Below are positions 1 through 45,282 of a stretch of DNA of 64,000 nucleotides, one piece after another. A program made the translations under genes and the position numbers. The notes beneath the pieces are model-generated. The model saw only the letters and a program-made list of their open reading frames with translations. It did no database searches and had not been told where the DNA came from. Location of the stretch: positions 124,001-188,000 of the IMG/VR virus record IMGVR_UViG_3300047548_001122; one strand, given 5' to 3'. Position 1 is the stretch's first letter; each line of letters begins with the position of its first letter.

Positions 1-672
1 TTATCATTAAGAAATACTTTTACATCTTCTTCTTTTGCTGTTATGGATTCAGGTTGGAAATACCAGTACGACAAATACAATGATGTCTATCGCTGGATTC
101 CATTAAATGGAGATATTGCTGGACTTTGTGCTAGAACAGATATTGAAAGAGATCCTTGGTTCTCACCAGCAGGATTCAACAGAGGTCAAATTAAGAACGT
201 TGTAAAATTATCTTGGAATCCTACAAAAGCGGAAAGAGATTCTTTATATAAAGCTGGAGTTAATCCTATCGTTACATTCCCTGGAGAAGGCACCGTATTA
301 TACGGTGATAAGACCTTGTTGTCAAGACCTTCCGCTTTCGATAGAATCAATGTTCGCCGTCTGTTTATTGTACTTGAAAAATCTATCGCAAGAGCAGCAC
401 GTTCATCATTGTTTGAGTTTAACGACGAATTTACAAGAGCTCAATTTGTAAATCTAGTTGAACCATTCTTGCGTGATGTACAAGGTCGCCGTGGTATCTA
501 CGACTATCGTGTAGTATGTGATACAACAAATAATACACCAGAAGTAATTGATCGTAACGAATTTGTTGGCGACATCTATATTAAACCAGCACGTTCGATC
601 AACTTTATTCAACTTAACTTCGTTGCAGTACGTACAGGCGTATCGTTCAATGAAGTGGTTGGATCATTCTAA
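1..672 (+). CDS. gp18: Tail sheath protein, 3' part (frame open from base 1)
   Basis: WFSPAGFNRG, GDKTLL..SAFDRINVRRLF, FEFND..TR, RNEFVGDIYIKPARSINFIQLNF are gp18 C-terminal motifs; precedes gp19. Confidence 0.97.
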   Translation, partial: LSLRNTFTSSSFAVMDSGWKYQYDKYNDVYRWIPLNGDIAGLCARTDIERDPWFSPAGFNRGQIKNVVKLSWNPTKAERDSLYKAGVNPIVTFPGEGTVLYGDKTLLSRPSAFDRINVRRLFIVLEKSIARAARSSLFEFNDEFTRAQFVNLVEPFLRDVQGRRGIYDYRVVCDTTNNTPEVIDRNEFVGDIYIKPARSINFIQLNFVAVRTGVSFNEVVGSF

Positions 673-9277: not shown

Positions 9278-9805
9278 ATGACAGCCATTACTAGAAATCC
9301 TACAAATCCAAATTTTTTACAACCTAATAAGTTTATTTTAACTTTCAGTAGGTTGCCTAATATTCAATATTTTTGTCAGTCAGTTACTTTACCTGGACTG
9401 TCAATGTCTGAGATACCTCAGTTTACACCTTTTGTTGACGTATATTTACCTGGAGAAAAAGTTATATACGACTTACTAAACGTAACTTTTTTGGTAGATG
9501 AAGAAATCACAGCATGGAAAGAAGTACATGATTGGATTAGGGCAATGACTTTTCCTGAAAATTTTGATGAATATAAAAACTTACGTAATTTGAATCCAAA
9601 TAGAGCTCAGTTAAAACCACAATATTCGGATGCCAAGATTGTTGTTTTATCTTCCTCAAATAACCCAACACATGAGTTTGTTTTTTATGATGTTTTCCCA
9701 ACAAGTATAAGTACCATAATTCTTTCTACACAAGAAGATCCCAACTCTATACCTACGGCAGATGCAACCTTTAGATATTCATATTATGATATAAAAACTG
9801 TTTGA
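9278..9805 (+). CDS. gp3: Tail completion / tube terminator protein
   Basis: NFLQPNKF..YFCQSVTLPG, LNVTFLVDEE...WKEVHDWI, DATFRYSYY; gp23-gp3-uvsY synteny. Confidence 0.85.
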   Translation: MTAITRNPTNPNFLQPNKFILTFSRLPNIQYFCQSVTLPGLSMSEIPQFTPFVDVYLPGEKVIYDLLNVTFLVDEEITAWKEVHDWIRAMTFPENFDEYKNLRNLNPNRAQLKPQYSDAKIVVLSSSNNPTHEFVFYDVFPTSISTIILSTQEDPNSIPTADATFRYSYYDIKTV

Positions 9806-9830
9806 CATTATTTTTTAATTATTGTATAAT
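9802..9830 (+). promoter_or_regulatory. Sigma70-type promoter for uvsY-uvsW
   Basis: TTGACA (9802)-17 bp-TATAAT (9825). Confidence 0.88.
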
Positions 9831-14434: not shown

Positions 14435-16146
14435 TGTTACTCTTTAGAAATATAAAGTGGAAAAACCTGTTAAGCACAGGTAACAACTTCACAGAAATAA
14501 AACTAGACAATCAAAGTAATACACTTATTGTTGGTGAGAACGGTTCAGGTAAATCTACTTTACTTGATGCCTTATGCTTCGCACTTTTCGGAAAAGCATT
14601 TAGAAACATAAACAAACCAAACCTTATCAATTCAATTAACGGTAAAGATTGTGTAGTTGAAGTTACATTTGATACAAATAATAAGTCTTATAAAATTATA
14701 AGAGGTATTAAACCCAACCTTTTTGAAATTTATTGTAATAACGAGTTATTAAATCAAGAGGCTGCGTCTAGAGATTACCAAGATTATCTGGAAAGATTTA
14801 TTCTGAAGATGAATTATAAATCTTTCACGCAGATTGTGATTCTAGGTTCAGCATCATTCACACCCTTCATGCAATTGTCTGCATCTGATCGCAGATCAAT
14901 CATCGAAGATTTGTTAGACATACAGATTTTTTCTACGATGAATAATATCGTAAAAGAAAAAATTTCAAAGAACAAAGAAAACTCTACGATAAAAAAGAAT
15001 GATATTGAATTATATTCACAAGAATATAAATTAAAGAAAGAACACTTAGACAAATTAAATTTAGATACTGATGCTAAGGTGACCGAGTATGAGAATGAAA
15101 TACAAACTAATAATGATGCCTTGGAAACCTTACATGCGGAAGTTACAGGACACACAGCTAGTATTGAGGAATTACAAACTGCCGTTTCGAACAAGTTGGA
15201 CATTGAAACAAAAGTCAAAAAGATATCCAAACTTGAATCGCAGATTGAAAGCAATATCACCAAATTCAACAAAGATATCGATTTTTTCCGACATCATGAT
15301 GATTGTCCAACGTGCAGACAAACCATTGCCGTGGAGATTAAAGAAAAAGAAATCGAGTCACTTACTGGAAGAGTCGAAGAATCTAAGCAAGGCCTTACTG
15401 AACTTGAAACTAAACTCAATGAAGAACAGCAAAAACTTAATGAAATAGTGGAGAAACAAAAAGAAATACAAAGAATTCAGGTTGAAATTGCTACTAAAAA
15501 TGCTTCGATTACGGGCATAAACAAGTATATTAGTAAGTTGCAGTCTTTAATACTTGAACTTAAAAACAATAAAACCAATACACAGAAAGAAGAAGATACT
15601 TTAAAGGAGTTGAAGTCTGCACTAAACAAAATGCAGGAAGAGTTGAAAGAACTTATTGAAGAAAAAACTTATTATGAATTCGCTTCTAATCTTTTAAAAG
15701 ATACTGGTATTAAAACCAAAATTGTAAAACAGTATTTACCAATCATAAACAAATTAGTAAATAAGTATTTGGCTTCTTTAGATTTCTTTGTCAATTTTAA
15801 TTTAGATGAATCGTTTAAAGAAACAATCAAGTCAAGACACCGAGATGAATTTAGTTATCATAATTTTTCTGAAGGTGAAAAACAAAGAATTGATATGGCA
15901 CTAATGTTGACATGGAGAGCGATTGCAAAGTTGAAGAACTCTTCAAACACAAACTTGTTGATATTGGATGAAACGTTTGATTCTTCGTTAGATTCTACTG
16001 GTACAGATGAATTGATGAAACTGTTACACATGTTAGAAGGTGTAAATTTATTTGTTATCTCACATAAAGGCGATATACTACAAGATAAGTTTATAAATGT
16101 AATACGATTTGTGAAAGAGAAGAATTTTTCTAGGATGGTAAAATGA
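14434..16146 (+). CDS. gp46: Recombination ATPase subunit (Rad50/SbcC-like), GTG start
   Basis: GENGSGKST, CPTC zinc hook, FSEGEK signature, LILDE, ISH. Confidence 0.97.
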   Translation: MLLFRNIKWKNLLSTGNNFTEIKLDNQSNTLIVGENGSGKSTLLDALCFALFGKAFRNINKPNLINSINGKDCVVEVTFDTNNKSYKIIRGIKPNLFEIYCNNELLNQEAASRDYQDYLERFILKMNYKSFTQIVILGSASFTPFMQLSASDRRSIIEDLLDIQIFSTMNNIVKEKISKNKENSTIKKNDIELYSQEYKLKKEHLDKLNLDTDAKVTEYENEIQTNNDALETLHAEVTGHTASIEELQTAVSNKLDIETKVKKISKLESQIESNITKFNKDIDFFRHHDDCPTCRQTIAVEIKEKEIESLTGRVEESKQGLTELETKLNEEQQKLNEIVEKQKEIQRIQVEIATKNASITGINKYISKLQSLILELKNNKTNTQKEEDTLKELKSALNKMQEELKELIEEKTYYEFASNLLKDTGIKTKIVKQYLPIINKLVNKYLASLDFFVNFNLDESFKETIKSRHRDEFSYHNFSEGEKQRIDMALMLTWRAIAKLKNSSNTNLLILDETFDSSLDSTGTDELMKLLHMLEGVNLFVISHKGDILQDKFINVIRFVKEKNFSRMVK

Positions 16147-16916
16147 ATTTTCAAGAATATCTAACGTGGTATAGAGATGTCGTGGATAAAGAAGTTGAGG
16201 GATGGTTTTATCCAATCGACATAATTGTTATGTATGGTATATTGAAAGAGATTCAAAGAAATATTTCAGGTGATATTTGTGAGATTGGTGTAGCTTATGG
16301 TAAAAGTGCTATTGCTATTTCCAATTTTAAAAGATCAGAAGATAATTTATATCTCTATGATATTTTTCCCGAAGAAGTTTTTTCCAAATGTTTACTTAAC
16401 ATTAAAAAGTTTGGTACAGATGATAATTTAGTTTGGAGAATAGAAGATACTACCAATCTAGAACACAGTCAAAAACTTTTTGATAAACGTTTAAGATTCC
16501 TACACATAGATGGATGCCATGAACACTCTGCCGTATTAAGTGATTTACAGTTTTTTAGTCACTACATGGTAGATCAAGGAATAATAGTGCTTGACGATTT
16601 CAATGATTACGAGTATCCTGGTGTCAACAGTGCTGCCATAGAATTTAGTTTGGCAAAATATAATGTTAAAAACTGGAGAGTGTTTGCTATTGGTGATAAT
16701 AAGGCTTACATGTGTCAAAAAAAATATGTAACTACTTATCAATCTCTGTTAGCAATGTTTATGAAAAATGCATTACAAACAATGAACGTTCCTTTTCCTT
16801 TACCTTTAGCACTTCGAGAGATGCTTGATGTAAATGTTTTAATGTGTGATTCCCGTGAAGATTGGGAATATAAAAGGATTATAGAAAATATAAATGATAA
16901 ACCTAGAATAGGATAA
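16143..16916 (+). CDS. Class I SAM-dependent methyltransferase (Methyltransf_24-like)
   Basis: ICEIGVAYGKS, FLHIDGCHEH..V.SDL, GIIVLDDF. Confidence 0.8.
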   Translation: MNFQEYLTWYRDVVDKEVEGWFYPIDIIVMYGILKEIQRNISGDICEIGVAYGKSAIAISNFKRSEDNLYLYDIFPEEVFSKCLLNIKKFGTDDNLVWRIEDTTNLEHSQKLFDKRLRFLHIDGCHEHSAVLSDLQFFSHYMVDQGIIVLDDFNDYEYPGVNSAAIEFSLAKYNVKNWRVFAIGDNKAYMCQKKYVTTYQSLLAMFMKNALQTMNVPFPLPLALREMLDVNVLMCDSREDWEYKRIIENINDKPRIG

Positions 16917-16920
16917 AGTT

Positions 16921-17505
16921 ATGAGTGAAATTTTAACACTTGATACTTCCGAAGGCATAACCAAATTTAAGGAAGAAAAACCTCAACTATTAGTTGTATA
17001 TTCTGATAAGCATCCAATGTTGAATGAAGTGATGCCTGAATATACTGAACCTCTACCAAATAAAGATATGTATGATTTGGTAAAGAATATGAAAGAAACC
17101 ATGAAGATTTATGGTGGTGTAGGACTTTCAGCTAATCAGTGTGGCATAAGAAAAAGAGTTTTTGTTATGGGTACAGATCAATTTCAAATTGCATGTATCA
17201 ATCCTAAAGTCTTAGAGGTGTCTGAAGAAAAAGAAAAACAAATAGAAGGATGTTTGTCTTTCCCTGCAATGTTTATGAAAGTCGAAAGACCAAAATCAGT
17301 TTTTGCTGAATATACTGATGAGAATGGAGAAGTTCATAGAGAATGGTTTCAAGGATTAACTGCACGTTGTTTTTTACATGAAACCGATCACATGAATGGA
17401 ATAAAATATACAAAATATGTTGGTCCAGTGGCCATTCGTATGGCTCAACAAAAACAGTTGAAAAAAATTAAAACTGTTAAAAGAAGAATGAAAAATGGCG
17501 TATAG
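16921..17505 (+). CDS. def: Peptide deformylase
   Basis: GVGLSANQCG, EGCLS, HETDH. Confidence 0.95.
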   Translation: MSEILTLDTSEGITKFKEEKPQLLVVYSDKHPMLNEVMPEYTEPLPNKDMYDLVKNMKETMKIYGGVGLSANQCGIRKRVFVMGTDQFQIACINPKVLEVSEEKEKQIEGCLSFPAMFMKVERPKSVFAEYTDENGEVHREWFQGLTARCFLHETDHMNGIKYTKYVGPVAIRMAQQKQLKKIKTVKRRMKNGV

Positions 17506-18772
17506 TTTTGATCCTAAAGATGATGTTGAAACTCAGTGGCAAAAGTGGCAAGACTCGGGTATTGAATATCAAAATATAGATGTCGATCAGTTACGTGAGA
17601 AAACCATAAAAGAACTTACGTATGTGTCTGGCATGGATGTTAAAGAATACACACTGTTTCAAAAGTGGTGTGAGGTTCAAGAAAAATATCCTACGATGTT
17701 GGTCAACGACCTATGGGAAGGCGAAAAGAAAGTTCTCATAGATGATGAACAAAGAAGGTCGATTGAAGAGATTAAAAATAATTTTTGGGTACCTAGTACA
17801 CCTGAAGATTATCTAAACTTACAACCAGAATTAATTTACACAAATAAAGAAGATAATCTACCAGAGTTATGGAACACTATACGAACATTTTCTTCCACAA
17901 TGAAGAACAACTCGAATATTGGACGTAATTTAAACTTTATTGTTCGTGACAAAGTAACTAAAAAATATCTTGGTGTTATCTGCATTAGTTCCGACTTCTT
18001 AGATTTGACACCAAGAGATAACTTTATTGGCTGGTCCAGAGAATTAAAAACTCAAGGTGGTATGATTAATCATACAGCTATAGGATCAACAATCGTTCCT
18101 TTACAACCTTTGGGTTATAATTATGTGGGTGGCAAATTACTTGCTCTATTGTGTTTGTCTGATCCTGTACAACAGTTATGGGAAAAACTTTACGGAGATA
18201 AATTAGTATCTGTAACTACTACATCATTATATGGTAAAACAAAAGCCGGTGGATTATCACAATACGATAATTTGGATCATTGGTTGCCGATGGGTTTTAC
18301 TTCTGGCTCTGTTTCATTTGAACCTTTGACCGATACTAGATACATGATACGTGAATGGTTGAAAACAAATCATACCAGAAAATATTTTGAGTGGTATGTT
18401 GCAAAGAAACCTTCTGGACAACCACATAAAAGAGATCATAAAAATCGATCTTTAAATTTTACATACACACAGTTAAGCATACCAAAAGAATTGATTCGTT
18501 CTGAACATGCAAGAGGAATTTATTTTTCACCGTTATATGATAAGTCTTGTGAATTTTTACGTGGTGACCATGACGGTAAAAATATGAATAAGTTATTTGA
18601 CACCAGTGTTGAATCGTTGGTTGATATCTGGAAAACTAAACACGCTAAACCGAGAATCAAACAATTGGTAAAAAAAGATAAAGTATCTTATGATACCTTG
18701 TTCTATGATGATTTGTGCTACTTAACTTGGGAAGAAACAAAAGAAAAATACCTTCCACAAGTTGGTCGGTAA
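17495..18772 (+). CDS. DruA/DUF4338-like protein, paralog A (Mom-like GNAT fold inferred)
   Basis: GRNLNFIVRD..YLGVI, PRDNFIGW, IVPLQPLGYNYVGGKLLAL, VTTTSLYG..SQYDNL match the DruA pattern as I recall it. Confidence 0.65.
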   Translation: MAYSFDPKDDVETQWQKWQDSGIEYQNIDVDQLREKTIKELTYVSGMDVKEYTLFQKWCEVQEKYPTMLVNDLWEGEKKVLIDDEQRRSIEEIKNNFWVPSTPEDYLNLQPELIYTNKEDNLPELWNTIRTFSSTMKNNSNIGRNLNFIVRDKVTKKYLGVICISSDFLDLTPRDNFIGWSRELKTQGGMINHTAIGSTIVPLQPLGYNYVGGKLLALLCLSDPVQQLWEKLYGDKLVSVTTTSLYGKTKAGGLSQYDNLDHWLPMGFTSGSVSFEPLTDTRYMIREWLKTNHTRKYFEWYVAKKPSGQPHKRDHKNRSLNFTYTQLSIPKELIRSEHARGIYFSPLYDKSCEFLRGDHDGKNMNKLFDTSVESLVDIWKTKHAKPRIKQLVKKDKVSYDTLFYDDLCYLTWEETKEKYLPQVGR

Positions 18773-18787
18773 TAATAAAAAAGATGC

Positions 18788-18816
18788 TTGACAATTGAAG
18801 AAAGTTCCTATATAAT
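18788..18816 (+). promoter_or_regulatory. Sigma70-type promoter for the tRNA-like RNA
   Basis: TTGACA (18788)-17 bp-TATAAT (18811); no ORF between it and the next promoter. Confidence 0.88.
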
Positions 18817-18828
18817 TGTATCTGAAAT

Positions 18829-18891
18829 GCGGAGAGTCCGAGACAACCTGCCCCCGCAGGTAGAGAGGTTTAACTCCTCTTATCCGCTCCA
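18829..18891 (+). ncRNA. 63-nt mini tRNA-Gly-like RNA with encoded CCA
   Basis: Acceptor GCGGAGA/TATCCGC + T73 + CCA; T-arm AGAGG-TTTAACT-CCTCT; anticodon-like arm ACCTG-CCCCCG-CAGGT; D-arm reduced to GTC-CGA-GAC. Confidence 0.75.
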
Positions 18892-18896
18892 CCCAC

Positions 18897-18963
18897 GTTA
18901 TCAAATTAGCAACAGTTGTTAAAAAGACAACGGCTTGACTTTTCCTTTTTCCTGTGTTATAAT
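18897..18963 (+). promoter_or_regulatory. Extended -10 sigma70 promoter with upstream tandem palindromes (vWA gene)
   Basis: TTGACT (18935)-17 bp-TGnTATAAT (18958); GTTRT-N7-RCAAC at 18897 and 18915. Confidence 0.8.
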
Positions 18964-18991: not shown

Positions 18992-21256
18992 ATGACAACT
19001 TTTACCGCAGAGACTAAATCGCAATTGGCAAAACTCCTTGCCACCGAAAACTTGCGAATTGAACACCAAAAGATTCGTACAGCCCGATTCGATCCAAAGA
19101 ATCGGGTTTTATATTGTCCTATTTGGAAAAATATGTCAGGAGCTCTTTATGATCTTTTGATGGGTCATGAAGTAGGTCACGCTTTGTACACTCCTGCTCA
19201 AGGTTGGCATGATGCGGTTTGCGAAAAGGGTAAAAACTATAAAGCATTTTTGAATGTTATTGAAGATGCTCGAATCGAAAAGAAAATCAAACGGAAATAT
19301 CCTGGTATTCGCAGGTCTTTTGTTACTGCCTATAATGAATTGATGGAAAGAAATTTCTTTGAGATTAAAGGTAAAGACATCAATAAAATGTCCTTCATTA
19401 ATCGATTGAACCTTTTCACAAAATCTTCTGGAACTATTGATATTTCTTTTACTGGTTTTGAAGAAAAACTTGTAGAAGAAGTTATGCGTTGTGAAACTTG
19501 GGATGATGTAATTCGTGTCACTGGTCTTGTTTGGGATTATTCCAAAGATGAACAGTTCGAAATGATGCAAGATTTTGATTTCGATAATTTGGAATTCGAT
19601 GAGGATGGTGAATACGAATTCGAATATGAATTGGAAGAATCTGAAGAAGGTTTCGATTCTGATGATTCGAAGAAAAATGGAAAATCATCTACTCAATCTG
19701 AAGAAAATGGTGAAGAAGGTGAGGGTTCGGGAAATTCTAATAAATTCGACACCGAATCAAATGAAGAGAGTGAAGGAGAAAGTGAATCTTTTTCGATAGT
19801 TCGTAATAAAGAATCTGCTTTAACTAACAAAGATATGTTTCAACCATTCTGTGAAACTGATGATGCGTTTCGTATGAATGAAAATACTCTGCTTGATGAA
19901 AAATGTAAAGAGTATATCTATCTTACTTTGCCTACTCCTGTTTTGAAAAATATTATTACGCCAGCTTCTCGCGTACAAAAACTTTTGGCCGATCATTACT
20001 CTAATCATTTTAACAGAAATGAATTGTTCAATAATTTCAAACGAAAAAATGAACGATACATTTCTTTGCTTGCCAAAGAATTCGAAATGAAGAAGGCGGC
20101 TTCTTGTTACGCAAAAGCTAAAACTTCAAATACAGGAGATATTGACGTATCGAAATTGTACAAATACAAAATTGATGATTCTATTTTCAAAAAGATGATG
20201 AGAATACCAAAAGGTAAATCTCACGGTTTGATTTTGCTTTTGGATAAATCAGGTTCAATGTCAAACAATATGAAAGGTTCTATTGAACAAATTCTAGTTT
20301 TGGCTATGTTCTGTAGAAAAGTAAATATTCCTTTTTCAGTTTACGGATTTGGGAATAATTCTACCGGTTATTGTATCGATAAGGAAGTTGATAACCTCGG
20401 TCGTGATGAAGAGTTTTTCAAACACAAAATTGGTGATGTTTATATGAATGCTGTATTCCTTAGAGAGTACATTAATTCTAGAATGAGTAATGTTGAATTC
20501 AACAATGCTTTGAAAAATATGGTTTGTTTGATGAATGGATTCTCACATAGGTATGGTAGAGATTATCCTCCTGTCGAATGTTTGTCGAATACACCTTTGA
20601 CTGAAGCTATTGTTGCTACCGAAGCAATCACTCAAGAATTTAGAAAAGTAAATAATCTTGATATTGTAAATCTGGTGATTGTACACGATGGTGATGCAGA
20701 TAGCATTTCTCATTATAATACTGGTCGAGATGAAGAAGGATATTCTTTGACTGGAAGATTTTCAACAAGTTATTTTAATGTTCTACTTCGTGACAATAAG
20801 ATTCATTTTGAAGATAAGTTGGAACACGATAGTTTAAATTCTGCTGTTTTGAAATGGTATAAACAAAAAACTGGTGCAAATGTTTTTGGTTTTTTTGTAA
20901 CCGATGATAATGCCAGTAGCATGAACGGTGCTATTTGTAAAAATTTCTACACTGAAAATGAAACTAAAAACTTCTATGATAGAATTGAAAATTATCATGA
21001 AAGAAAAGAAGCTGCAACAGTTCTAGTCAAAAAACTTAAAAAAGAAAAGTTTCTATTGTCGAAAAAACCAGGGTTTAAAAGCTTTTTCATTGTACCTGGG
21101 GGTAGCAATTTGCAGATTGATGATGGCGAACTTGAAATTGATGATACCAAAAAAATTACGGCAACAAAATTGACTAATGCCTTTTTGAAGTATAATAAAA
21201 AACGGCAAGTTAACCGTATTTTGGTTTCCAAATTTATTGACGGTATTGCAGTTTGA
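18992..21256 (+). CDS. CobT-like protein: HEXXH metallopeptidase-like N-domain + vWA domain
   Basis: HEVGHALYT, NVIEDARIE, acidic linker, MIDAS LLDKSGSM, NTPL, HDGD. Confidence 0.8.
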   Translation: MTTFTAETKSQLAKLLATENLRIEHQKIRTARFDPKNRVLYCPIWKNMSGALYDLLMGHEVGHALYTPAQGWHDAVCEKGKNYKAFLNVIEDARIEKKIKRKYPGIRRSFVTAYNELMERNFFEIKGKDINKMSFINRLNLFTKSSGTIDISFTGFEEKLVEEVMRCETWDDVIRVTGLVWDYSKDEQFEMMQDFDFDNLEFDEDGEYEFEYELEESEEGFDSDDSKKNGKSSTQSEENGEEGEGSGNSNKFDTESNEESEGESESFSIVRNKESALTNKDMFQPFCETDDAFRMNENTLLDEKCKEYIYLTLPTPVLKNIITPASRVQKLLADHYSNHFNRNELFNNFKRKNERYISLLAKEFEMKKAASCYAKAKTSNTGDIDVSKLYKYKIDDSIFKKMMRIPKGKSHGLILLLDKSGSMSNNMKGSIEQILVLAMFCRKVNIPFSVYGFGNNSTGYCIDKEVDNLGRDEEFFKHKIGDVYMNAVFLREYINSRMSNVEFNNALKNMVCLMNGFSHRYGRDYPPVECLSNTPLTEAIVATEAITQEFRKVNNLDIVNLVIVHDGDADSISHYNTGRDEEGYSLTGRFSTSYFNVLLRDNKIHFEDKLEHDSLNSAVLKWYKQKTGANVFGFFVTDDNASSMNGAICKNFYTENETKNFYDRIENYHERKEAATVLVKKLKKEKFLLSKKPGFKSFFIVPGGSNLQIDDGELEIDDTKKITATKLTNAFLKYNKKRQVNRILVSKFIDGIAV

Positions 21257-22553: not shown

Positions 22554-22582
22554 TTGACACTACACACAGAGTATAGTATAAT
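22554..22582 (+). promoter_or_regulatory. Sigma70-type promoter
   Basis: TTGACA (22554)-17 bp-TATAAT (22577). Confidence 0.88.
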
Positions 22583-23018: not shown

Positions 23019-23834
23019 ATGGAAATACAAATCAAACTTGAAGAATTGAAAAAGAATAAATTATTTGTTGCTACACCAATGTATGGTGGTATGAATCATG
23101 GCCTTTATGCAAAATCTTGCCTTGATTTGCAAACATTGATGATTCGATATGGCATTGACATTAAATTTTCCTTTCTCTTCAACGAATCTTTAATCACCAG
23201 AGCTCGAAATTATTTGACGGATGAATTCCTCCGTTCAGATTGTACACACATGTTGTTTTTGGATTCGGACATTCACTTCAACCCACAAGATGTTTTAGCA
23301 CTAATGGCTCTCGACAAAGATGTTATCGGAGGTCCTTATCCTAAAAAATCTATTAACTGGGGTAATATCGCTCATGCAGCACGTAAACACACTGAACTTG
23401 ATCCTAGAGAATTAGAAAATGTTGTTGGTGAATATGTGTTTAATGTTGTAAAAGGAACTCAACACTTCCAAGTTACTGAACCACTACAGGTTTTGGAAAT
23501 TGGAACTGGCTTCATGATGATTAAACGTCATGTGTTTGAAAAACTTGAGAAGGCATATCCACAACTTCGTTATAAACCAGATCATATTGGCCAAGCACAC
23601 TTTGATGGTTCACGATACATTCATGCATACTTTGATACTATCATTGACACTGTAGATTCAGCAACAGGTGGCGGATCAGATCGTTATCTAAGTGAAGATT
23701 ATATGTTCTGTCAATTGTGGCGTAAAATTGGCGGAGAAATTTATCTATGTCCTTGGATGAAAACACAACACATCGGCACATATGCATTTACAGGAAATAT
23801 GCCTAAGGTTGCTGAACTAACTGGAAAATTGTGA
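23019..23834 (+). CDS. GT-A-fold glycosyltransferase-like protein
   Basis: LFVATPMYGG, ESLITRARN, HMLFLDSDI (DxD), LSEDYMFC. Confidence 0.65.
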   Translation: MEIQIKLEELKKNKLFVATPMYGGMNHGLYAKSCLDLQTLMIRYGIDIKFSFLFNESLITRARNYLTDEFLRSDCTHMLFLDSDIHFNPQDVLALMALDKDVIGGPYPKKSINWGNIAHAARKHTELDPRELENVVGEYVFNVVKGTQHFQVTEPLQVLEIGTGFMMIKRHVFEKLEKAYPQLRYKPDHIGQAHFDGSRYIHAYFDTIIDTVDSATGGGSDRYLSEDYMFCQLWRKIGGEIYLCPWMKTQHIGTYAFTGNMPKVAELTGKL

Positions 23835-24169
23835 TGGCAATAACAAAGGAAGTGGCAAAAAGCCAAACTGCAACGACCGGTGGCCGCAAGTTTGATGGTG
23901 GTAAACTACAATATGGTTTACTACCACCACTTGCACTAAAGGCCACGGTTGACGTATTAACCTTTGGTGCGGAAAAATACGAACCTGATAATTGGAAATA
24001 TGTGCCAGATTCCAAGCGCAGGTATTTCGATGCATTACAAAGGCATATTTGGGCATGGAAAGAAGGTGAGAAAGATGATCCTGAATCTGGTAAACACCAC
24101 TTAGCACATGCGCTTTGTTGCCTCATGTTTCTATATGAACATGATATAATGTATTCTGTTGATGAATAA
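23834..24169 (+). CDS. dATP/dGTP diphosphohydrolase-like (DUF5664-type)
   Basis: GRKFDGGKLQYGLLP, LTFGAEKY..DNW, ALQRH..AW..GE..DPESGKHHLAHA. Confidence 0.82.
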   Translation: MAITKEVAKSQTATTGGRKFDGGKLQYGLLPPLALKATVDVLTFGAEKYEPDNWKYVPDSKRRYFDALQRHIWAWKEGEKDDPESGKHHLAHALCCLMFLYEHDIMYSVDE

Positions 24170-28093: not shown

Positions 28094-28122
28094 TTGACAT
28101 AATATAAATATTGTTGTATAAT
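28094..28122 (+). promoter_or_regulatory. Composite sigma70 + late promoter
   Basis: TTGACA (28094)-17 bp-TATAAT (28117) with TATAAATA (28103-28110) inside the spacer. Confidence 0.8.
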
Positions 28123-28909: not shown

Positions 28910-29098
28910 ATGATGAGAAAAGATCATAGCTTTCGTTTACCGAAAGAAGTCAAACGCTTGTTGTCTACTATGCCAAGTGCAGATTCGCACAAATACAAAA
29001 ACCTAATGATTGAAGCAATCATCACAGGATCAAAAGAAGTTCCCAGAGAAAAGAAAAAAAATAGGAATAAATCAGTAGTTGAAATAGAATCTGAATAA
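28910..29098 (+). CDS. Small hypothetical protein
   Basis: GGAG RBS, 62 aa, TAATG coupling to next gene. Confidence 0.55.
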   Translation: MMRKDHSFRLPKEVKRLLSTMPSADSHKYKNLMIEAIITGSKEVPREKKKNRNKSVVEIESE

Positions 29099-29529
29099 TG
29101 AAACCAAAATTCCTTTCAGCTCACATGAAAGTTGCTGAAGTGTATTCGGAGCTTTCTTCAGCTAAGAGATTAAAGGTTGGTGCTGTAATTGTAAAAAACG
29201 ATACAATTATAGGTATTGGTTATAACGGAACACCTTCAGGTTGGAATAACAATTGTGAATCACATATAATAAATGATGCCGGTGATTACGATTTGAAAAC
29301 TAAACCAGAAGTGATTCACGCCGAATCAAATGCTATTTCCAAAGTTGCAAAATCTACAAACTCAACTGAAGGTTCATATATGTTTGTAACTCATGCACCT
29401 TGTTTGGAATGTGCAAAACTAATACACCAATCTGGAATTACTAGAGTATATTATAAAAATACTTATAGAAATGATGATGGTGTAAAATTTTTAGAAAAAT
29501 GCGGTGTTAAGATATTGAATATACAATGA
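29098..29529 (+). CDS. cd: dCMP deaminase
   Basis: KVGAVIV..GYNG, HAESNAI, THAPCLECAK. Confidence 0.93.
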   Translation: MKPKFLSAHMKVAEVYSELSSAKRLKVGAVIVKNDTIIGIGYNGTPSGWNNNCESHIINDAGDYDLKTKPEVIHAESNAISKVAKSTNSTEGSYMFVTHAPCLECAKLIHQSGITRVYYKNTYRNDDGVKFLEKCGVKILNIQ

Positions 29530-35329: not shown

Positions 35330-35621
35330 GTATTCCATAGATTATAGGGATGAAAATACCTATTTTACCATACTTGATGGTAAATATCAAAACGTCACCG
35401 TAACTTACTCGCAAACCCAATTCTTTGAAGATGAGGGTTTTGCGAGGTTAAAATTCAATTATAATGTCATAGATTCTTCAACATTTGCCTTAGAACAGTT
35501 GACAGACGATCAAGAATTTGTTATAATGTTAGGTGATATCTTACAAGACTACATTCTAGTGAAGGCAAAAAATCTTGAAACAGTTAGAGACAGTAATTCT
35601 GAAGAACTTGATTTTCAATGA
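35265..35621 (+). CDS. Hypothetical protein at the T4 gp40 position
   Basis: Overlaps uvsX end and gp41 start; AAGGA RBS; identity with gp40 not established. Confidence 0.5.
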   Translation: MKLLMEILCKIFPWMKKQQSPKYSIDYRDENTYFTILDGKYQNVTVTYSQTQFFEDEGFARLKFNYNVIDSSTFALEQLTDDQEFVIMLGDILQDYILVKAKNLETVRDSNSEELDFQ

Positions 35622-36981
35622 AGAGTATACCCGTAAAGTATTTCCTTTCATAAAACACGAATATTTTTCAGATAACGTACACAAAAAATTCTTCAATGAA
35701 GTAAAACGTTTTATTGAAGAATATAAAACTCCTCCTACCTACGAATCACTACTCATCGATTTTACCGAATCTAAAAGATTAACACAAACCGAAGTGAACG
35801 GTTGTGTTGATTTGTTGCGTGAACTAAATTCAAATAAGAATGAAAGTTCCGAAATGGAATGGCTGATTGACCAAACAGAAAAGTTTTGTCAAGATAAAGC
35901 AATCTATAATGCAATCATGAATTCGGTCAGTATTCTTGACCAAAGTGGTGAAGATAAGAAATCTAAAGGTGAGATACCTAAACTTCTCAGTGATGCATTG
36001 GCCGTATCTTTTGATAATCATATTGGTCATGATTATGTAAATGATTTTGATGCACGGTATGATTTCTATCACAAACAAGAAACGCGGATTCAATTTGACC
36101 TTGATATCTTTAATAGGATTACCAAAGGTGGTCTTCCAATTAAAACTCTGAATATCGCACTTGCTGGCACAGGCGTTGGTAAATCTTTGTTCATGTGTCA
36201 CGTTGCCGCATCTTGTATATCACAAGGTAAAAATGTTTTGTATATTACACTTGAGATGGCCGAAGAAAAGATTGCAGAACGTATAGATGCTAATCTTTTG
36301 AATGTAGACTTGAATGAGTTATATACTTTGACTAAAGATGATTATGGTCGAAAGTTTAATCACCTGAAAACCAAACTCAATGGTAAATTAATCATCAAAG
36401 AATATCCGACTGCATCGGCATCAACACTTCATTTCAGAGCTTTGTTGAATGAATTGCAATTGAAGAAGAATTTTAAACCTGATATTGTGTTTATCGATTA
36501 TCTGAATATTTGTTCATCATCTCGTATTAAACCTGGTGCGAACGTGAATAGTTATTCTTATATCAAAGCAATTGCAGAAGAACTTCGTGGTCTTGCAGTT
36601 GAATTTGCTGTGCCTGTTGTTTCTGCTACACAGACAACTAGAAGTGGTTTTACAAATACTGATCCTGGTCTAGAAGATACTTCAGAATCTTTTGGTCTGC
36701 CAGCAACAGCAGACTTTATGTTTGCTTTGATTAGTACTGAAGAACTTGAACAGTTGAATCAGATTATGGTGAAACAGTTGAAGAATCGTTACGGTGATCC
36801 AAATCATTTCAAACGATTCGTTGTAGGTATTGATAGAGCTAAGATGAAATTGTATGATGCTGAACCTGATGCACAGAATGATATTTCAGATTCAGGTCAA
36901 CCAAATGATACACCTCCATTAAATACATTTGGTAATCGTGAGAGTAAATTTAACAAAAACTTTGGCGGAATTAAAGTATGA
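35575..36981 (+). CDS. gp41: Replicative DnaB-like helicase (TTG start)
   Basis: AGTGVGKS, ITLEMAEE, IDYLNI, SATQTTR, SESFGLPATAD, QLKNRY. Confidence 0.97.
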   Translation: MKQLETVILKNLIFNEEYTRKVFPFIKHEYFSDNVHKKFFNEVKRFIEEYKTPPTYESLLIDFTESKRLTQTEVNGCVDLLRELNSNKNESSEMEWLIDQTEKFCQDKAIYNAIMNSVSILDQSGEDKKSKGEIPKLLSDALAVSFDNHIGHDYVNDFDARYDFYHKQETRIQFDLDIFNRITKGGLPIKTLNIALAGTGVGKSLFMCHVAASCISQGKNVLYITLEMAEEKIAERIDANLLNVDLNELYTLTKDDYGRKFNHLKTKLNGKLIIKEYPTASASTLHFRALLNELQLKKNFKPDIVFIDYLNICSSSRIKPGANVNSYSYIKAIAEELRGLAVEFAVPVVSATQTTRSGFTNTDPGLEDTSESFGLPATADFMFALISTEELEQLNQIMVKQLKNRYGDPNHFKRFVVGIDRAKMKLYDAEPDAQNDISDSGQPNDTPPLNTFGNRESKFNKNFGGIKV

Positions 36982-38093
36982 GTTTGAATAAAGATCAAGC
37001 AATTTATTGTGCGAATGTATTCTCAAACTATTTCGATAGATTCGAAAGAATAGATGAATACATGCGTGAACAAAAGTTGTCATCTATGTCAGAGAGGTCA
37101 CCAACACTTTTTGGTATGGGACCTGAAGATGATTTGTTTTCAGACTTCACGGTTTCACCAGAAAAAATGAACTTTGAAGTTGTCGAACTTTCGCAAGAAA
37201 AGTGGGACATTTATTTGAATATGATTTCTTCTCATTCAAACATGACAAGTATTCCTGGTCGCTGCTTGAGATTGGCTGTACTAGAAACTACAACCAATAA
37301 ATGGTGTGGTTTTATTAGACTAGGTTCGCCAGTAATTAATTGTAAACCTAGAAATGAAATGTTGGGTCAAGTGTTCACTCAAACTGAAGGTGGCGCACAG
37401 TTATTTAATCGATGCGCTATCATGGGTTTTGTTATTGTACCTGCACAGCCATTTGGTTATAATTACCTTGGTGGTAAATTGATGGCTGCGATTTGTACTA
37501 CACATGAAGTACGTGAAATGTTGAACAAGAAATATAACATGACAACTTGTTTGTTTGAAACAACCAGTTTATACGGTTCAACTAAGGCTGTATCACAATA
37601 TGATGGCATGAAACCTTATATTCGATACAAAGGTTTGACAGATAGTGATTTTCTTCCTATGTTACATGGTAAAACATACACCGATCTAAAAGAATATATG
37701 GAAGAAATTATTGGTGAACCACTCGCACCAGAAGGTGCTTCTAGTCGTAAACTAAAGATATCAAATGCCATGGTGTCACATATCAATACTGCTTTGAAGG
37801 GTACACCAGAAGGTGCCAAGTTTAAAAAGACCATAGAAAATGCAAAGAATCTGAACGAACAAAAGCGTTACTATGTTTCAGATTATGGGTTTAGTAACAT
37901 GGTTGACTTTGTTAATGGAAAAACAACTAAACTGATTGCTGGTGAAAACTATGAAAAGTTTCATTTGAAAAACATAATTGAGTGGTGGAGAAAGAAAGCC
38001 ATTAACAGATTTGAAACGTTAAAGACTGAGAATAGACTTAGGACAGAGATCGAAGTCTGGACAGGCGAAAAAGAGATTGACATTATTCGGTAG
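36978..38093 (+). CDS. DruA/DUF4338-like protein, paralog B
   Basis: PGRCLRLAV..KWCGFIRLGSP, IVPAQPFGYNYLGGKLMA, ETTSLYG..SQYD shared with 17495..18772. Confidence 0.65.
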   Translation: MSLNKDQAIYCANVFSNYFDRFERIDEYMREQKLSSMSERSPTLFGMGPEDDLFSDFTVSPEKMNFEVVELSQEKWDIYLNMISSHSNMTSIPGRCLRLAVLETTTNKWCGFIRLGSPVINCKPRNEMLGQVFTQTEGGAQLFNRCAIMGFVIVPAQPFGYNYLGGKLMAAICTTHEVREMLNKKYNMTTCLFETTSLYGSTKAVSQYDGMKPYIRYKGLTDSDFLPMLHGKTYTDLKEYMEEIIGEPLAPEGASSRKLKISNAMVSHINTALKGTPEGAKFKKTIENAKNLNEQKRYYVSDYGFSNMVDFVNGKTTKLIAGENYEKFHLKNIIEWWRKKAINRFETLKTENRLRTEIEVWTGEKEIDIIR

Positions 38094-41503: not shown

Positions 41504-42337
41504 ATGAAAGATTTGATTATAGGATGTTCCACCAACTACGATTGGTCTAAGTTAAAATATTGGATCAATTCTATCAATGCATCAGGATTTGAAGGTGATA
41601 AAATCCTGATTCTAATGAACTGTGATGCTGAAACAGTTAAAAAAATTACAGAAGCAGGTTTCGGTGTAATTGGATTCAATCAAGATGAACAAGGTAATTT
41701 GAGTTATAGTTCTTCAATGCCTGTCCACACCGAAAGATTTTTACACATCTACAATTATTTAAAAGACAGAGACTATCGTTATGTAATCACAACCGATGTT
41801 AAAGATGTTGTCTTTCAAAAAAATCCTATCGAATATCTTGAAGCGGAATGTATTTCTAAAAATCTAATTTTTGCTTCCGAAAGTATCAAGTATAAAGACG
41901 AACCTTGGGGTGACCAAAACCTAAAAGAAACTTTTGGTCCATACATCTACGAACAGTTTAAGAACAATGAAATCTTCAACGTTGGTGTTTTGGCTGGTCA
42001 CGGCTACGCTATTCGTGATTTAGCTTTGAACATTTTTGTCGCTAGTTTAAATCGTCCTATTCCAATTTGTGACCAATCTACGTTTAATTTCCTCATTAGT
42101 CAAAACCCTTACACCTCATTGAGTAAGTATTGTTTCTCTGAAGATGGTTGGGCTGCACAACTAGGAACAACAGGTGATCCATCAAAATCTGCACAATTCG
42201 ATCCTTTGTTACTCGAAGAGAAACCAAAATTTGATGGTAATATTGTAACTACATCAAAAGGTAAAGAATTCTATATTGTACACCAATATGATAGAGTTCC
42301 AGAAATGAAAAAGGTCATTGAGGAAAAATTTGCATGA
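41504..42337 (+). CDS. GT-A-like glycosyltransferase
   Basis: YVITTDVKDVVFQ (DxxD), FNVGVLAG, DQSTFN, HQYDR. Confidence 0.6.
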   Translation: MKDLIIGCSTNYDWSKLKYWINSINASGFEGDKILILMNCDAETVKKITEAGFGVIGFNQDEQGNLSYSSSMPVHTERFLHIYNYLKDRDYRYVITTDVKDVVFQKNPIEYLEAECISKNLIFASESIKYKDEPWGDQNLKETFGPYIYEQFKNNEIFNVGVLAGHGYAIRDLALNIFVASLNRPIPICDQSTFNFLISQNPYTSLSKYCFSEDGWAAQLGTTGDPSKSAQFDPLLLEEKPKFDGNIVTTSKGKEFYIVHQYDRVPEMKKVIEEKFA

Positions 42338-43290
42338 AACGTCTATTGTTTGTAGTTCATCGTTATGCTCCTTATCCTGGCGGTTCTGAAAATTATGTCA
42401 GAGATATGGCCGAAGAATGTGTTCGGAGAGGACATGATGTTTCTGTTTTCACTGGCGAACACAAAGGCGATTTGAATGGAGTAAAAGTTACATCAGACGT
42501 AAATATTCTAGGTCAAAAGTTTGATCTCATTATCGTTCATGGCGGCGACGTTGGCTTACAAAATTTAGTATTGATGAACGCAGAAAGAATACCTTCACCA
42601 ATACTATTCATGATTATAAAACCATCCGAAAGTCCTGTTTATATTCATGCGATGAACACCGTAAAATACCTAGGATGTTCTGCACCAGAGGATTATGAAT
42701 TATTGAAAAAACATAATCACATGAATAAGTGTGTTAGAGTTATTCATGGTATAGATGAAAAGATATCAGTTGGTATGACAGGTTTTAGAGAGAAGTATGG
42801 TATAGAAACAAAATATATGTTTTTATCGTGTGGAGGTTTCTGGCCAAATAAAGCAATGAATGAACTCGCACAAATATTCAATGATATTGGAAGAGATGAT
42901 GCTACGCTAGTATTAACAGGTTATGATAACAGACATAACATTCGTCCAATTGATACGAAATATGTTAAGACATTTATGATAGAAGATAGAGAAGATGTTT
43001 TGTCGGCCATTCGTGATGCAGATTTATACATTATGCATTCCTTCAGTGAAGGGTTTGGTTTAGTTCTTCTAGAGTCTATGTTAAATAAAACTCCTTGGGC
43101 TTCTAGAAAAATTGCTGGTGCTAATTTAATGAGTGAGTTTGGATTTACATACGAAAATGACCATCAACTTAGAGAATATATTTTAGATTTTGATGGTAAT
43201 AAAGATGCACAAATAGAAAATGCATATGAGTATGTAACATTAAATCATATGATAAAAAATACAGTTGATGATATTATGAGGTTAGTATGA
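42334..43290 (+). CDS. GT4 (GT-B) glycosyltransferase
   Basis: YPGGSE, ADLYIMHSFSEGFGLVLLESM (EX7E). Confidence 0.85.
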   Translation: MKRLLFVVHRYAPYPGGSENYVRDMAEECVRRGHDVSVFTGEHKGDLNGVKVTSDVNILGQKFDLIIVHGGDVGLQNLVLMNAERIPSPILFMIIKPSESPVYIHAMNTVKYLGCSAPEDYELLKKHNHMNKCVRVIHGIDEKISVGMTGFREKYGIETKYMFLSCGGFWPNKAMNELAQIFNDIGRDDATLVLTGYDNRHNIRPIDTKYVKTFMIEDREDVLSAIRDADLYIMHSFSEGFGLVLLESMLNKTPWASRKIAGANLMSEFGFTYENDHQLREYILDFDGNKDAQIENAYEYVTLNHMIKNTVDDIMRLV

Positions 43291-43922
43291 ATTTTACTTT
43301 TGGTATTCTTACAAAATACGATGATGAAGAAAAACTAAAAGAAGTTATAGACTCGATACACAATCTAAACATTCCGGAAAATGGTGGTGATTATCAAGTT
43401 TTGGTAATAGGCGAAAAGAAAGTAGAAGGATCAAAATATGAGAGGTACATTTATTTTGATGAAACTGCCAAACCAGCCTGGATAACCAAAAAGAAAAATT
43501 TATTGGCTCGTGCCGCAAATTTTCAAAACATTGTTTTAATGCACGATTACTTTGTTTTTGATAAAGATTGGTATAAAAACTTTTTAGAGTTTGGAAATGA
43601 TTGGGACATTTGTTCTTGTCCACAATATCTAATAAACGGTAAACGACATTTTACCGATTGGGTTTGTTGGGATTCACCTTTATTTCCGAGATATACTTCA
43701 TTACATTATGATGATTGGTCACATGTGAATTACATGTATCAATCTGGCGGTTTCGTTGTTGCAAAAACACAGTTGATTATTGATAATCCATTCAATGAAC
43801 AATTAGGTTGGGGTCAAGCTGACGATGTTGAATGGTCTCTCCGAGTGAGACATAGATACAAGTATGTTTGTAATGGAAAAAGTATAGTGAGACATAATAA
43901 GGTACATCGTGATGCGAAATAA
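43287..43922 (+). CDS. GT-A-like glycosyltransferase
   Basis: ITKKKN..A, IVLMHDY, WGQADDVEWS. Confidence 0.65.
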   Translation: MNFTFGILTKYDDEEKLKEVIDSIHNLNIPENGGDYQVLVIGEKKVEGSKYERYIYFDETAKPAWITKKKNLLARAANFQNIVLMHDYFVFDKDWYKNFLEFGNDWDICSCPQYLINGKRHFTDWVCWDSPLFPRYTSLHYDDWSHVNYMYQSGGFVVAKTQLIIDNPFNEQLGWGQADDVEWSLRVRHRYKYVCNGKSIVRHNKVHRDAK

Positions 43923-45282
43923 ATTAATTATATTTGACTTAGATGGTGTTTTGATTGAATCTAGAGAATTGCATTATCACGCTCTTAATGATGCATTAAG
44001 AAAAGTCGATGAACGTTATGTAATTGACCGAGAAGAACACCTCAGTGTTTATGATGGTTTAAACACCACTAGAAAACTTGAAATGTTGACCGAAAGAAAA
44101 GGTCTGCCTACGAGTTTCTACGATCAAGTATGGCAAGATAAACAGTCAGCAACTTTTGAATTAATCAAACAGTTTCCAAAAAATCCAACCTTAATAGAAT
44201 TTTTCAGTAGTCTAAAATCGCAAGGTATAAAAGTTGCCGTTGCAAGTAACTCTATACGTGAAACGGTAAAGCTTGCTTTAATATCTATAGGTGTGTTAGA
44301 ATATGTAGATTACTTTGTAAGTAATGAGGATGTTAGGAGACCCAAGCCATATCCAGAGATGTATTGGCAATGCATGACCGTTTTAAATGCATTGCCAAAA
44401 ACTACAGTTATCTTTGAAGATAGTCACATTGGTAGAGAGGGTGCTTTAAATTCTGGAGCTCACTTAATTCCATTAAAAGATTCTTTTGATTTGACCAAAG
44501 ACAAAATAGACGATGCGCTTGATATATTAAATGGAATTAAAAAAACAAATATACCATGGAGAAATAAAAAAATGAATGTATTGATACCAATGGCAGGCGC
44601 AGGTAGTAGATTTGCTGCAGCAGGTTATACTTTTCCAAAACCTCTAATCGAAGTTCGTGGAAAACCAATGATTCAGGTTGTTGTGGAAAATCTTAATGTT
44701 GAAGCGCACTTCATTTTCATTGTACAAAAAGAACACTACGAAAAGTATAATCTAAAACAATTGTTGAATCTTATTGCTCCAGGTTGCGACATAATCCAGG
44801 TTGACGGTATAACAGAAGGTGCTGCGTGTACAACATTACTCGCAAAAGAACTTATTAATAACGGTGAACCTCTATTGATGGCAAACTCGGATCAATTTGT
44901 TGAGTGGAATTCCAATGAGTGTTTATATGCATTTACTGCTGATACTATCGATGGTGGTATAGTTACTTTTGAAGCCACGCATCCAAAGTGGTCTTTTGCT
45001 AAATTGGATGAAAATGGTTTTGTTTCAGAAGTTGCGGAGAAAAAACCAATCTCGAATATTGCAACGGTAGGAATATATTATTGGAAACAAGGTAGCGATT
45101 ATGTTAAGTATGCTGAACAGATGATACAGAAAAACATTCGTGTCAATAATGAATTCTATGTTTGTCCAGTATTTAATGAAGCAATTGCCGATGGTAAAAA
45201 GATAAGAACCAAACATATCGAAAGAATGTGGGGAATAGGAACACCAGAAGATTTAAATTACTTTTTGGAGAACCATAAATGA
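43909..45282 (+). CDS. HAD phosphatase fused to sugar nucleotidyltransferase
   Basis: FDLDGVL, VASNS, KPYPE, FEDS; then IPMAGAGSRF...PKPLI, ANSDQ, GTPEDL. Confidence 0.88.
   Translation: MMRNKLIIFDLDGVLIESRELHYHALNDALRKVDERYVIDREEHLSVYDGLNTTRKLEMLTERKGLPTSFYDQVWQDKQSATFELIKQFPKNPTLIEFFSSLKSQGIKVAVASNSIRETVKLALISIGVLEYVDYFVSNEDVRRPKPYPEMYWQCMTVLNALPKTTVIFEDSHIGREGALNSGAHLIPLKDSFDLTKDKIDDALDILNGIKKTNIPWRNKKMNVLIPMAGAGSRFAAAGYTFPKPLIEVRGKPMIQVVVENLNVEAHFIFIVQKEHYEKYNLKQLLNLIAPGCDIIQVDGITEGAACTTLLAKELINNGEPLLMANSDQFVEWNSNECLYAFTADTIDGGIVTFEATHPKWSFAKLDENGFVSEVAEKKPISNIATVGIYYWKQGSDYVKYAEQMIQKNIRVNNEFYVCPVFNEAIADGKKIRTKHIERMWGIGTPEDLNYFLENHK

Follow-up and report, generated by a model that had tools for sequence, protein, structure and literature searches.

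An example of transfer RNA (tRNA) being reserved for a transferase rather than for the ribosome has been described in Staphylococcus aureus, where non-proteogenic tRNA-Gly species serve as donors for FemXAB; weak binding to elongation factor Tu (EF-Tu) goes with the T-stem set A49-U65, U50-A64 and A51-U63, of which A49-U65 and A51-U63 mark the non-proteogenic species, while the proteogenic ones carry G51-C63 (PMC7826273). These tRNAs are chromosomal, fold into a full cloverleaf with a 7-nucleotide (nt) anticodon loop and are still able to decode. In bacteriophage Mu, it was shown in 2026 that Mom transfers glycine from Gly-tRNA-Gly to the N6 of adenine in DNA; it accepts all tRNA-Gly isoacceptors but rejects Gly-tRNA-Ala, an indication that it recognises the acceptor end (PMC13219725). 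Mu uses the tRNAs of its host for this and encodes none. Here we describe a 63-nt small-RNA gene at positions 18829-18891 (+) of a 64,000-nt stretch of DNA (the window; positions 124,001 to 188,000 of the IMG/VR record IMGVR_UViG_3300047548_001122), part of a 214-kb contig from a freshwater T4-like phage. As judged from its relatives in other phages, this element is a real phage small RNA, under selection and not described before, that derives from tRNA-Gly.

Several other described RNAs share single traits with the element. Like the D-armless tRNAs of mitochondria, such as metazoan mt-tRNA-Ser(AGY), it has a short D remnant, a length in the range of about 60-63 nt and intact acceptor and T arms, whereas the mitochondrial RNAs have retained a 7-nt anticodon loop and serve as decoders on specialised ribosomes. 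Its coaxial acceptor/T-arm helix with conserved U73 and C2-G71 also resembles the minihelix and microhelix substrates of synthetases, and glycine microhelices can be charged; minihelices, however, are laboratory constructs, while the element occurs naturally as a gene and has retained a CC loop and an invariant core besides. A phage tRNA gene valued beyond codon supply is known from T5, whose tRNA-Tyr acts against retron effectors (PMC11555353), but tRNAs of the T5 type are complete decoders that replace cleaved host tRNAs, and the element cannot replace a decoder.

A motif scan of IMG/VR found at least 120 viral contigs with the element (type 1); among the matches listed, 124 loci hold the full element in 47 distinct sequences, and the variant counts given here rest on these. 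For the window form, RNAfold gives a reduced cloverleaf (-24.4 kcal/mol, z = -3.24) as both the minimum-free-energy and the centroid structure, with the following parts.

18829..18835 (+): 5' strand of the acceptor stem, GCGGAGA, with pairs 1-4 invariant
18836..18846 (+): D-arm remnant, GUC-CGA-GAC plus AA, with a 3-base-pair (bp) stub at 18836-18844; G8-A17 invariant in 47/47 variants
18847..18860 (+): anticodon-arm remnant, with a 5-bp stem (18847-18851/18856-18860) and a CCCC tetraloop (18852-18855)
18864..18880 (+): T arm, with a 5-bp stem (18864-18868/18876-18880) and an invariant 7-nt loop UUUAACU (18869-18875)
18881..18891 (+): 3' strand of the acceptor stem, UAUCCGC, followed by U73 (18888) and an encoded CCA (18889-18891), with CCGCUCCA invariant

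The acceptor stem of the window form consists of G1-C72, C2-G71, G3-C70, G4-C69, A5-U68 and A7-U66 with a G6.A67 mismatch, and two linker bases separate the anticodon-like hairpin from the T stem. Canonical tRNA features are found in the 7-bp acceptor stem, the 5-bp T stem, the 7-nt T loop with U54 and A58 and the NCCA end, from which the conserved G.A at 6-67 and a U rather than C at T-loop position 56 are departures. The canonical D arm with its D loop is absent, as is a 7-nt anticodon loop with U33 and purine 37, and 43 of the 47 variants have a 4-nt loop instead. The D remnant looks like the two strands of a D stem joined after loss of the D loop. To all appearances, then, the element is a tRNA-Gly that has lost its D loop and part of its variable region and whose anticodon loop has contracted to a CCC(C/A) tetraloop. 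What it retains (the first four acceptor pairs, U73 and the encoded CCA, the CC loop, and the coaxial helix of acceptor and T arm) would be the set that bacterial glycyl-tRNA synthetase (GlyRS) reads; the same parts are required by RNase P, by the CCA-repair enzyme and by enzymes binding to the acceptor end. An earlier note, made from the letters of the window alone, had pointed to these acceptor pairs, U73 and CCA, the G6-A67 mismatch, the T arm and a D arm collapsed to a 3-bp stub, and all of them are present, the GUC/GAC stub included. It had also described a CCC-containing 6-nt loop; the CCC stands, but the bases flanking it covary, which gives a 4-nt loop on a 5-bp stem.

Covariation among the variants is strong, with a score of 0.289 against 0.099 in shuffled alignments, a value that none of 500 shuffles reached (0/500), and of 0.014-0.067 in controls with slid partners. 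RNAalifold, run independently, recovered the same 18 pairs, nine of which show compensatory changes. Such changes are found at four of the five pairs of the anticodon-like stem, where 97.9% of cells are paired, and at four of the five pairs of the T stem, where the figure is 99.1%; in the acceptor stem, pair 5-68 is U-A in 29 variants and A-U in 18 (n=47), while the G6.A67 mismatch is kept in 42/47. The bases closing the loop switch between C-G (23) and U-A (22; n=47) and are hence paired, so that the loop is CCC(C/A), of four bases and not six. With its closing pair it reads U-CCCA-A in 20 variants, C-CCCC-G in 19, and U-CCCC-A and C-CCCA-G in two each; the four rare larger loops (CACCCA, UCCCC, UCACCAA and CUUCCCA) every one retain NCC. 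Positions that do not vary are G1-G4, G8-A17, one loop C, the linker AG, the T loop with G53-C61, and CCGCUCCA, and two further loop C positions are at least 90% conserved. For the D stub, covariation neither supports nor refutes pairing because the stub is invariant.

Mean pairwise identity is 87.7% within the element (61 distinct loci), compared with 51% in the 12 bases upstream and 34% in the 25 bases downstream, and the flanking proteins have diverged to 40-60% identity. Since covariation is combined with an identity far above that of the flanks and of the flanking proteins, the element is, by this comparison, under strong purifying selection as an RNA and is not a decaying pseudogene. A lack of covariation in homologues and decay without conservation were two outcomes that, by the earlier note, would have told against its proposal, and neither is seen. 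A decaying tRNA-Gly pseudogene with no function would account for a tRNA-derived sequence that has lost canonical parts, but it has next to no chance of being right given 88% identity across phages against 40-60% in the flanking proteins and 34-51% in the flanks, compensatory changes in three helices and a conserved promoter.

The bacterial glycine identity set has been described as U73, G1-C72, C2-G71, C35 and C36 (PMC9976931), in line with the GlyRS elements that the earlier note had named. In the element family, U73, G1-C72, C2-G71 and G3-C70 are invariant in 47/47 variants. NCC is likewise kept in every loop variant, but in the window form it lies within a tetraloop, where GlyRS may or may not be able to read it as C35 and C36; the CC is the sole loop feature retained across the family. 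Together these features point to a glycine identity for the element. The likeness to the S. aureus tRNAs, with which it shares the glycine acceptor identity, extends in part to the T stem, since the window form has A49-U65, G50-C64 and A51-U63, which is two of the three weak-EF-Tu pairs in a comparison of sequence only. Within type 1, pair 51-63 is A-U in 44/47 variants and U-A in 2/47, and pair 49-65 is A-U in 37/47; in a related gene, type 2 (see below), pair 51-63 is A-U or U-A in 38/38 sequences. The pairs A49-U65 and A51-U63, given in the earlier note as marks of weak EF-Tu binding, are those of the published work (PMC7826273), and the second is the one kept in 44 of the 47 variants. As opposed to the S. 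aureus RNAs, the element is 63 nt long and phage-encoded, with no D loop and a tetraloop, and no Fem-family gene is found in the window.

The genomic setting bears on where the element came from. The gene order gp46, (methyltransferase), peptide deformylase, DruA-like protein, element, CobT-like peptidase and CobS holds wherever any of the 124 loci reaches those genes, and the DruA-like gene lies upstream in every locus that reaches far enough. A census of the slot after this gene, taken over 78 loci whose DruA-like gene is at least 74% identical and so covering one phage clade, gave the following occupants.

Type 1 (the element): 47 loci
Type 2: 5 loci
Type 1 and type 2 in tandem: 3 loci
Other GCGG..CCGCUCCA genes: 14 loci
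Nothing: 5 loci

The 14 other genes include type-1 variants, a third type and, in one locus (L329), a canonical 74-nt tRNA-Gly(UCC) called by ARAGORN. Because a canonical tRNA-Gly(UCC) occupies the same slot there, the element can be taken as a shrunken derivative of tRNA-Gly, as the earlier note had proposed.

Type 2 genes are 67-70 nt long, with a 3-bp D stub that covaries, the loop UGUCCAA, in which position 33 is G, and UGCGAAU as the T loop. They were matched in at least 120 contigs, with 88 full genes and 38 distinct sequences among the matches listed (for example L043:919-986, L223:1880-1946, L178:5185-5251 and L169:406-475 (-), among many others); ARAGORN makes no call for them and Rfam gives no match at E<=1. 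In the tRNA arrays of L223, L178, L171, L210 and L281, type 2 adjoins a canonical tRNA-Gly gene at a distance of 5-8 nt and is therefore not redundant with it. Right after type 2 at the end of such an array there is a conserved GC-rich non-coding stretch (L178:5252-5400, also in L233 and L259) that may be another structured RNA. The third reduced type, of 67-68 nt, has a GUG-AUAG-CAC stub, a loop with ACCC or CCCCC and the T loop AGCAAAG, and is found downstream of the DruA-like gene in L296, L320, L321, L325, L333 and L341 and after type 2 in L239 and L246; L183, L191, L202 and L354 carry yet another partner form.

The nearest cultured relatives of the phage are the Pelagibacter phages HTVC008M and Mosig and marine cyanomyophages, the hosts of which are SAR11 and cyanobacteria. 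In the same module, HTVC008M and Mosig each have a 74-nt tRNA-Gly(ACC) gene whose T loop is non-canonical. That of Mosig (L168:13635-13708), which has a promoter of its own, escapes ARAGORN and is entered as a hypothetical 31-amino-acid (aa) coding sequence, Mosig_000011, while that of HTVC008M (L166:7728-7801) is without annotation in its record. These genes belong to the same lineage and module as the element and share with it an own promoter and a GCGG..CCGC-U-CCA acceptor, the Mosig gene also sharing the 3' strand UAUCCGCUCCA; they differ in their length, in a 7-nt UUACCAA loop, a longer D arm and other positions, and score 16-18 bits with the R1 model. What stays constant across this turnover of types is, on the sequences compared, the glycine acceptor end with the CC loop, and what varies is all the parts that the ribosome requires. 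The family is large and fast-evolving, with three structural types in hundreds of phage contigs, often beside a normal tRNA-Gly.

The element appears to be a transcription unit of its own, since the gene downstream has a separate promoter. The features on either side of the RNA are these.

18788..18816 (+): sigma-70-type promoter of the small RNA, TTGACA at 18788-18793, a 17-nt spacer and TATAAT at 18811-18816, a 12/12 match
18817..18828 (+): short leader ending in AAU, with transcription probably starting a few bases ahead of G1
18910..18931 (+): AT-rich palindrome and hairpin, lying after the RNA gene and ahead of the next promoter, kept in most relatives
18935..18963 (+): separate promoter TTGACT-17-TATAAT with TG, an 11/12 match, serving the downstream CobT-like gene and conserved in relatives

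The claim in the earlier note of an own consensus promoter is borne out both by the full match at 18788-18816 and by conservation of this promoter in relatives. Among 82 distinct flanks of relatives, a -10 box matching at five or more of six positions is found in 77/82 and ends 9-11 nt before G1 in 71/82; the -35 box is perfect in 39/82 and an extended TG -10 is present in 35/82, so that the promoter comes in two architectures. Directly before G1, AAT is found in 60/82 flanks, and the leader would be removed by 5' processing with RNase P. Perfect copies of TTGACA-N17-TATAAT occur six times in the window (0.06 expected by chance), and the phage appears to use such textbook consensus promoters for its early genes; the six lie at 297-325 (-), 9802-9830, 18788-18816, 22554-22582, 28094-28122 and 35499-35527. 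The feature at 18910-18931 combines the palindrome CAACAGTTG with a GTTGT..ACAAC hairpin, is conserved in sequence rather than by covariation, and may be a (weak) 3' end, a processing site or an operator, while five lineages have instead a GC hairpin with a T run, an intrinsic terminator, directly after CCA. Two other readings of the locus were rejected, a terminator of the upstream gene (there is no U tract, and an own promoter is present) and a 44-aa open reading frame (ORF) at 18788-18922, a mechanical ORF that overlaps the RNA.

We consider it the most likely of the readings, quite possible while stopping short of probable, that the element is a stable, independently transcribed, non-decoding glycine acceptor that arose from a phage tRNA-Gly and may serve as a glycyl carrier for its DruA-like neighbour. 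In this model, the early consensus promoter would, as read at the level of sequence, drive transcription of the RNA, the leader of a few bases would be removed, and host GlyRS would charge the product with glycine, as the conserved identity nucleotides suggest. Lacking an elbow and a 7-nt anticodon loop, and having a T stem of the weak-EF-Tu type, the charged RNA would then stay off the ribosome and act as a dedicated glycyl carrier. Its most likely user, which is a lead only, would be the GNAT-fold DUF4338/DruA-like protein encoded directly upstream, by analogy with Mu Mom, which places glycine on DNA adenine, and with the Fem transferases fed by non-proteogenic tRNA-Gly. If charged, the element would be the first natural tRNA outside organelles to have been reduced to a pure aminoacyl carrier, and it offers a small natural system for the minimal requirements of GlyRS, RNase P and EF-Tu.

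The candidate enzyme partner is the following gene.

17495..18772 (+): DUF4338/DruA-like protein, 425 aa, Pfam DruA at E 2.6e-19

No relative of this protein was found in the PDB by sequence. Its AlphaFold model, built from 37 sequences, has a predicted local distance difference test score (pLDDT) of 86.8 and a predicted template modelling score (pTM) of 0.82; a model of the GNAT core alone (pLDDT 56) was discarded. When the full model was compared with the PDB by Foldseek, all of the top-50 hits that name a fold were of the GNAT type, with probabilities up to 1.0 and weak E values (2e-3 to 0.09), and included a tandem GNAT, several acetyltransferases, FeeM, the tRNA-acetylating toxin TacT and malonyl-CoA decarboxylase. 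In BFVD the best named match, after uncharacterised homologues, was Mom (E 5e-4, probability 1.0, TMt 0.58), followed by NAT_SF and GNAT proteins. A GNAT superfamily fold is therefore predicted for the model of the DruA-like protein, and the idea of a glycine donor gains a concrete lead from such a neighbour. A donor-enzyme pair of the RNA and the DruA-like protein is on this basis a plausible lead, and would have its counterpart in Mu, where Mom, a phage enzyme of the GNAT fold (predicted here for the DruA-like protein), takes glycine from a charged tRNA-Gly (PMC13219725). With such a neighbour, it becomes testable that tRNA-dependent modification of the Mu Mom type is widespread in environmental phages. 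More doubtful is the stronger proposal of a two-part module in phages of this lineage, in which a GNAT-fold transferase with a private non-decoding glycyl-carrier RNA, pared down to the needs of GlyRS and the transferase, would glycylate a macromolecule outside translation and at no cost to it, be it DNA, as in the case of Mom, or a protein or envelope component; if true, it would also open a first biochemical way into DruA, a component of type I Druantia defence.

Several points weigh against the glycyl-carrier model. The CC in its tetraloop may fail to fit the anticodon-binding domain of GlyRS, in which case charging would be weak and minihelix-like. As for the DruA-like protein, sequence similarity to Mu Mom is absent (hhalign probability 0.1%), its Foldseek scores are weak and generic for GNATs, the folds of which are mutually alike, and the protein keeps a QxxGxN/GGK motif, following strand 4, whose ligand could be acyl-CoA instead of an aminoacyl-tRNA. 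Pfam searches of the approximately 70 ORFs of the window gave no family of the Mom, Fem or L/F-transferase kind. The link between the RNA and the DruA-like gene is, moreover, one of synteny inherited within one phage clade, and the two genes lie 7-9 kb apart in a subclade and several kb apart in HTVC008M and Mosig. Membership of the DruA-like protein in the Mom family itself (Pfam PF25680) was rejected at the level of sequence, as Pfam gives DruA only and the PHROGs differ (19197 versus 1384). The window also holds a second DUF4338/phrog_19197 paralogue at 36978-38093, which is 28% identical to the first and has no RNA gene adjoining it. Marine cyanomyophages have this second form too, and one cyanophage homologue was deposited as "methylcarbamoylase mom" (the depositor's label only), and no tRNA-like gene was found near the homologue in cyanophage S-SCSM2R.

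An alternative that we regard as rather unlikely is that the RNA is a decoy or sponge that draws off a host factor acting on the acceptor end of tRNA-Gly, whether by binding or by modification; presented at high copy as a non-decoding look-alike, it would let the phage protect or manipulate translation, and candidates for the factor include a TacT-like GNAT toxin, toxins that modify the CCA end and GlyRS itself. The invariant part of the element is exactly the acceptor end with U73 and G71, and these two nucleotides define the specificity of TacT (PMC9976931); phage tRNAs have been shown to counter tRNA-targeting defences (PMC11555353), and the strong early promoter would suit a stoichiometric sponge. 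A decoy leaves unexplained, however, why the CC loop and the invariant core of D stub and T loop are retained, targets that are catalytic enzymes would demand tight, dead-end binding, and no such host system is known for this phage. The particular decoy suggested in the earlier note, one for anticodon nucleases, is disfavoured by the lack of a 7-nt anticodon loop, and its suggestion of a T-box mimic loses ground for want of a D-loop/T-loop elbow and with the nearest cultured relatives infecting SAR11 and cyanobacteria.

It is improbable that the element acts in cis as a processing or stability signal, with its tRNA-like fold recruiting RNase P or stopping 3' exonucleases and the freed RNA having no job. 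The punctuation of transcripts by tRNAs is an established principle and offers a precedent for such a signal, and the position between two co-directional genes, in most lineages without a strong terminator, would fit it. Against it, the RNA has its own promoter and the next gene another, five lineages terminate right after CCA, and genes of the same kind are found inside tRNA arrays; RNase P, furthermore, needs no glycine-specific acceptor pairs, U73 or CC loop, yet all of these are invariant.

At a similarly low level, if not slightly lower, we place the possibility of a working decoder, a tRNA-Gly comparable to the D-armless tRNAs of mitochondria whose loop opens on the ribosome to read GGN. 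In its mitochondrial mode, ARAGORN does call D-armless tRNA-Gly on the correct strand for the rare 7-nt-loop variants L095 (UCC) and L062 (ACC), the only two for which it does so, and 7-nt loops are present in type 2 genes; for the window form this mode gives no correct call. The 4-nt loop with its covarying closing pair is found in 43/47 variants, however, and opening that pair would give 6 nt and not 7, while type 2 has G at position 33 and coexists right beside a canonical tRNA-Gly. The element offers no elbow for ribosome contacts, its T stem falls in the weak EF-Tu class, and GGG accounts for only 25 of the 1169 glycine codons of the phage (2%), so that a CCC anticodon would be nearly useless. 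With a tetraloop, no D loop and hence no elbow, and this codon usage, decoding by the element is very unlikely, which strengthens the view of the earlier note that it probably cannot decode.

The glycyl-carrier candidate belongs to a whole class of phage RNA genes that has been overlooked by tRNA finders and Rfam, with one gene of a cultured pelagiphage annotated as a protein. ARAGORN in bacterial mode reports 0 tRNA genes in the whole window, Rfam gives nothing there at gathering scores, a permissive cut-off of E<=10 likewise yields no tRNA, and the element is without a match among the curated families of Rfam 15, Y RNA/YrlA and viral tRNA-like structures included, while canonical tRNAs in related loci are called by the same tools. 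The earlier note had foreseen that standard tRNA finders may miss the gene, and both are indeed blind to it. When the window was scanned on both strands for a T arm with a 7-bp acceptor stem (<=1 mismatch) and NCCA, 18829-18891 was the sole site in 64 kb, and no second copy or other type of the element was found in the window. A scan of 185,579 species-representative genomes for the core motif gave 28 matches, all of them due to chance by the covariance model (<=13 bits), and no host or prophage copy was found among those genomes. The sole match in a nucleotide search of GenBank phages was a coding stretch in Pelagibacter phage Mosig. Literature searches found no description of the element; a 2023 catalogue of viral structured-RNA candidates may contain it and does not discuss it (PMC10690425).

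As to the phage itself, its GC content is about 34% and the window holds the T4-like genes for portal, gp23, UvsY, UvsW, gp46/47, gp45 and gp44/62, together with RegA, DNA polymerase, UvsX and gp41. Among the same ORFs of the window, no Pfam hit to a tRNA-repair enzyme was obtained. The CobT-like peptidase downstream of the element (18992-21256) has an HEVGH (HExxH) zinc-protease motif at 19166-19180, no Pfam hit and an assignment to phrog_459, and it is followed by the gene for the CobS/MoxR-type AAA ATPase.

Further genes of the window hint at modified DNA or nucleotide pools, namely those for a MazZ-like dATP/dGTP diphosphohydrolase N domain (23831-24169), two Methyltransf_24 proteins (16143-16916 and 45997-46671), a GT4 glycosyltransferase (42334-43290), a fusion of HAD and nucleotidyl-transferase domains (43909-45282) and a dCMP deaminase (29098-29529). 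At 47152-49896 there is a gene for a 914-aa protein with a cytidylyltransferase-like N terminus and a zeta-toxin/P-loop kinase domain, and after it, at 49893-50420, one for a fusion of a HicA toxin with DUF6321.

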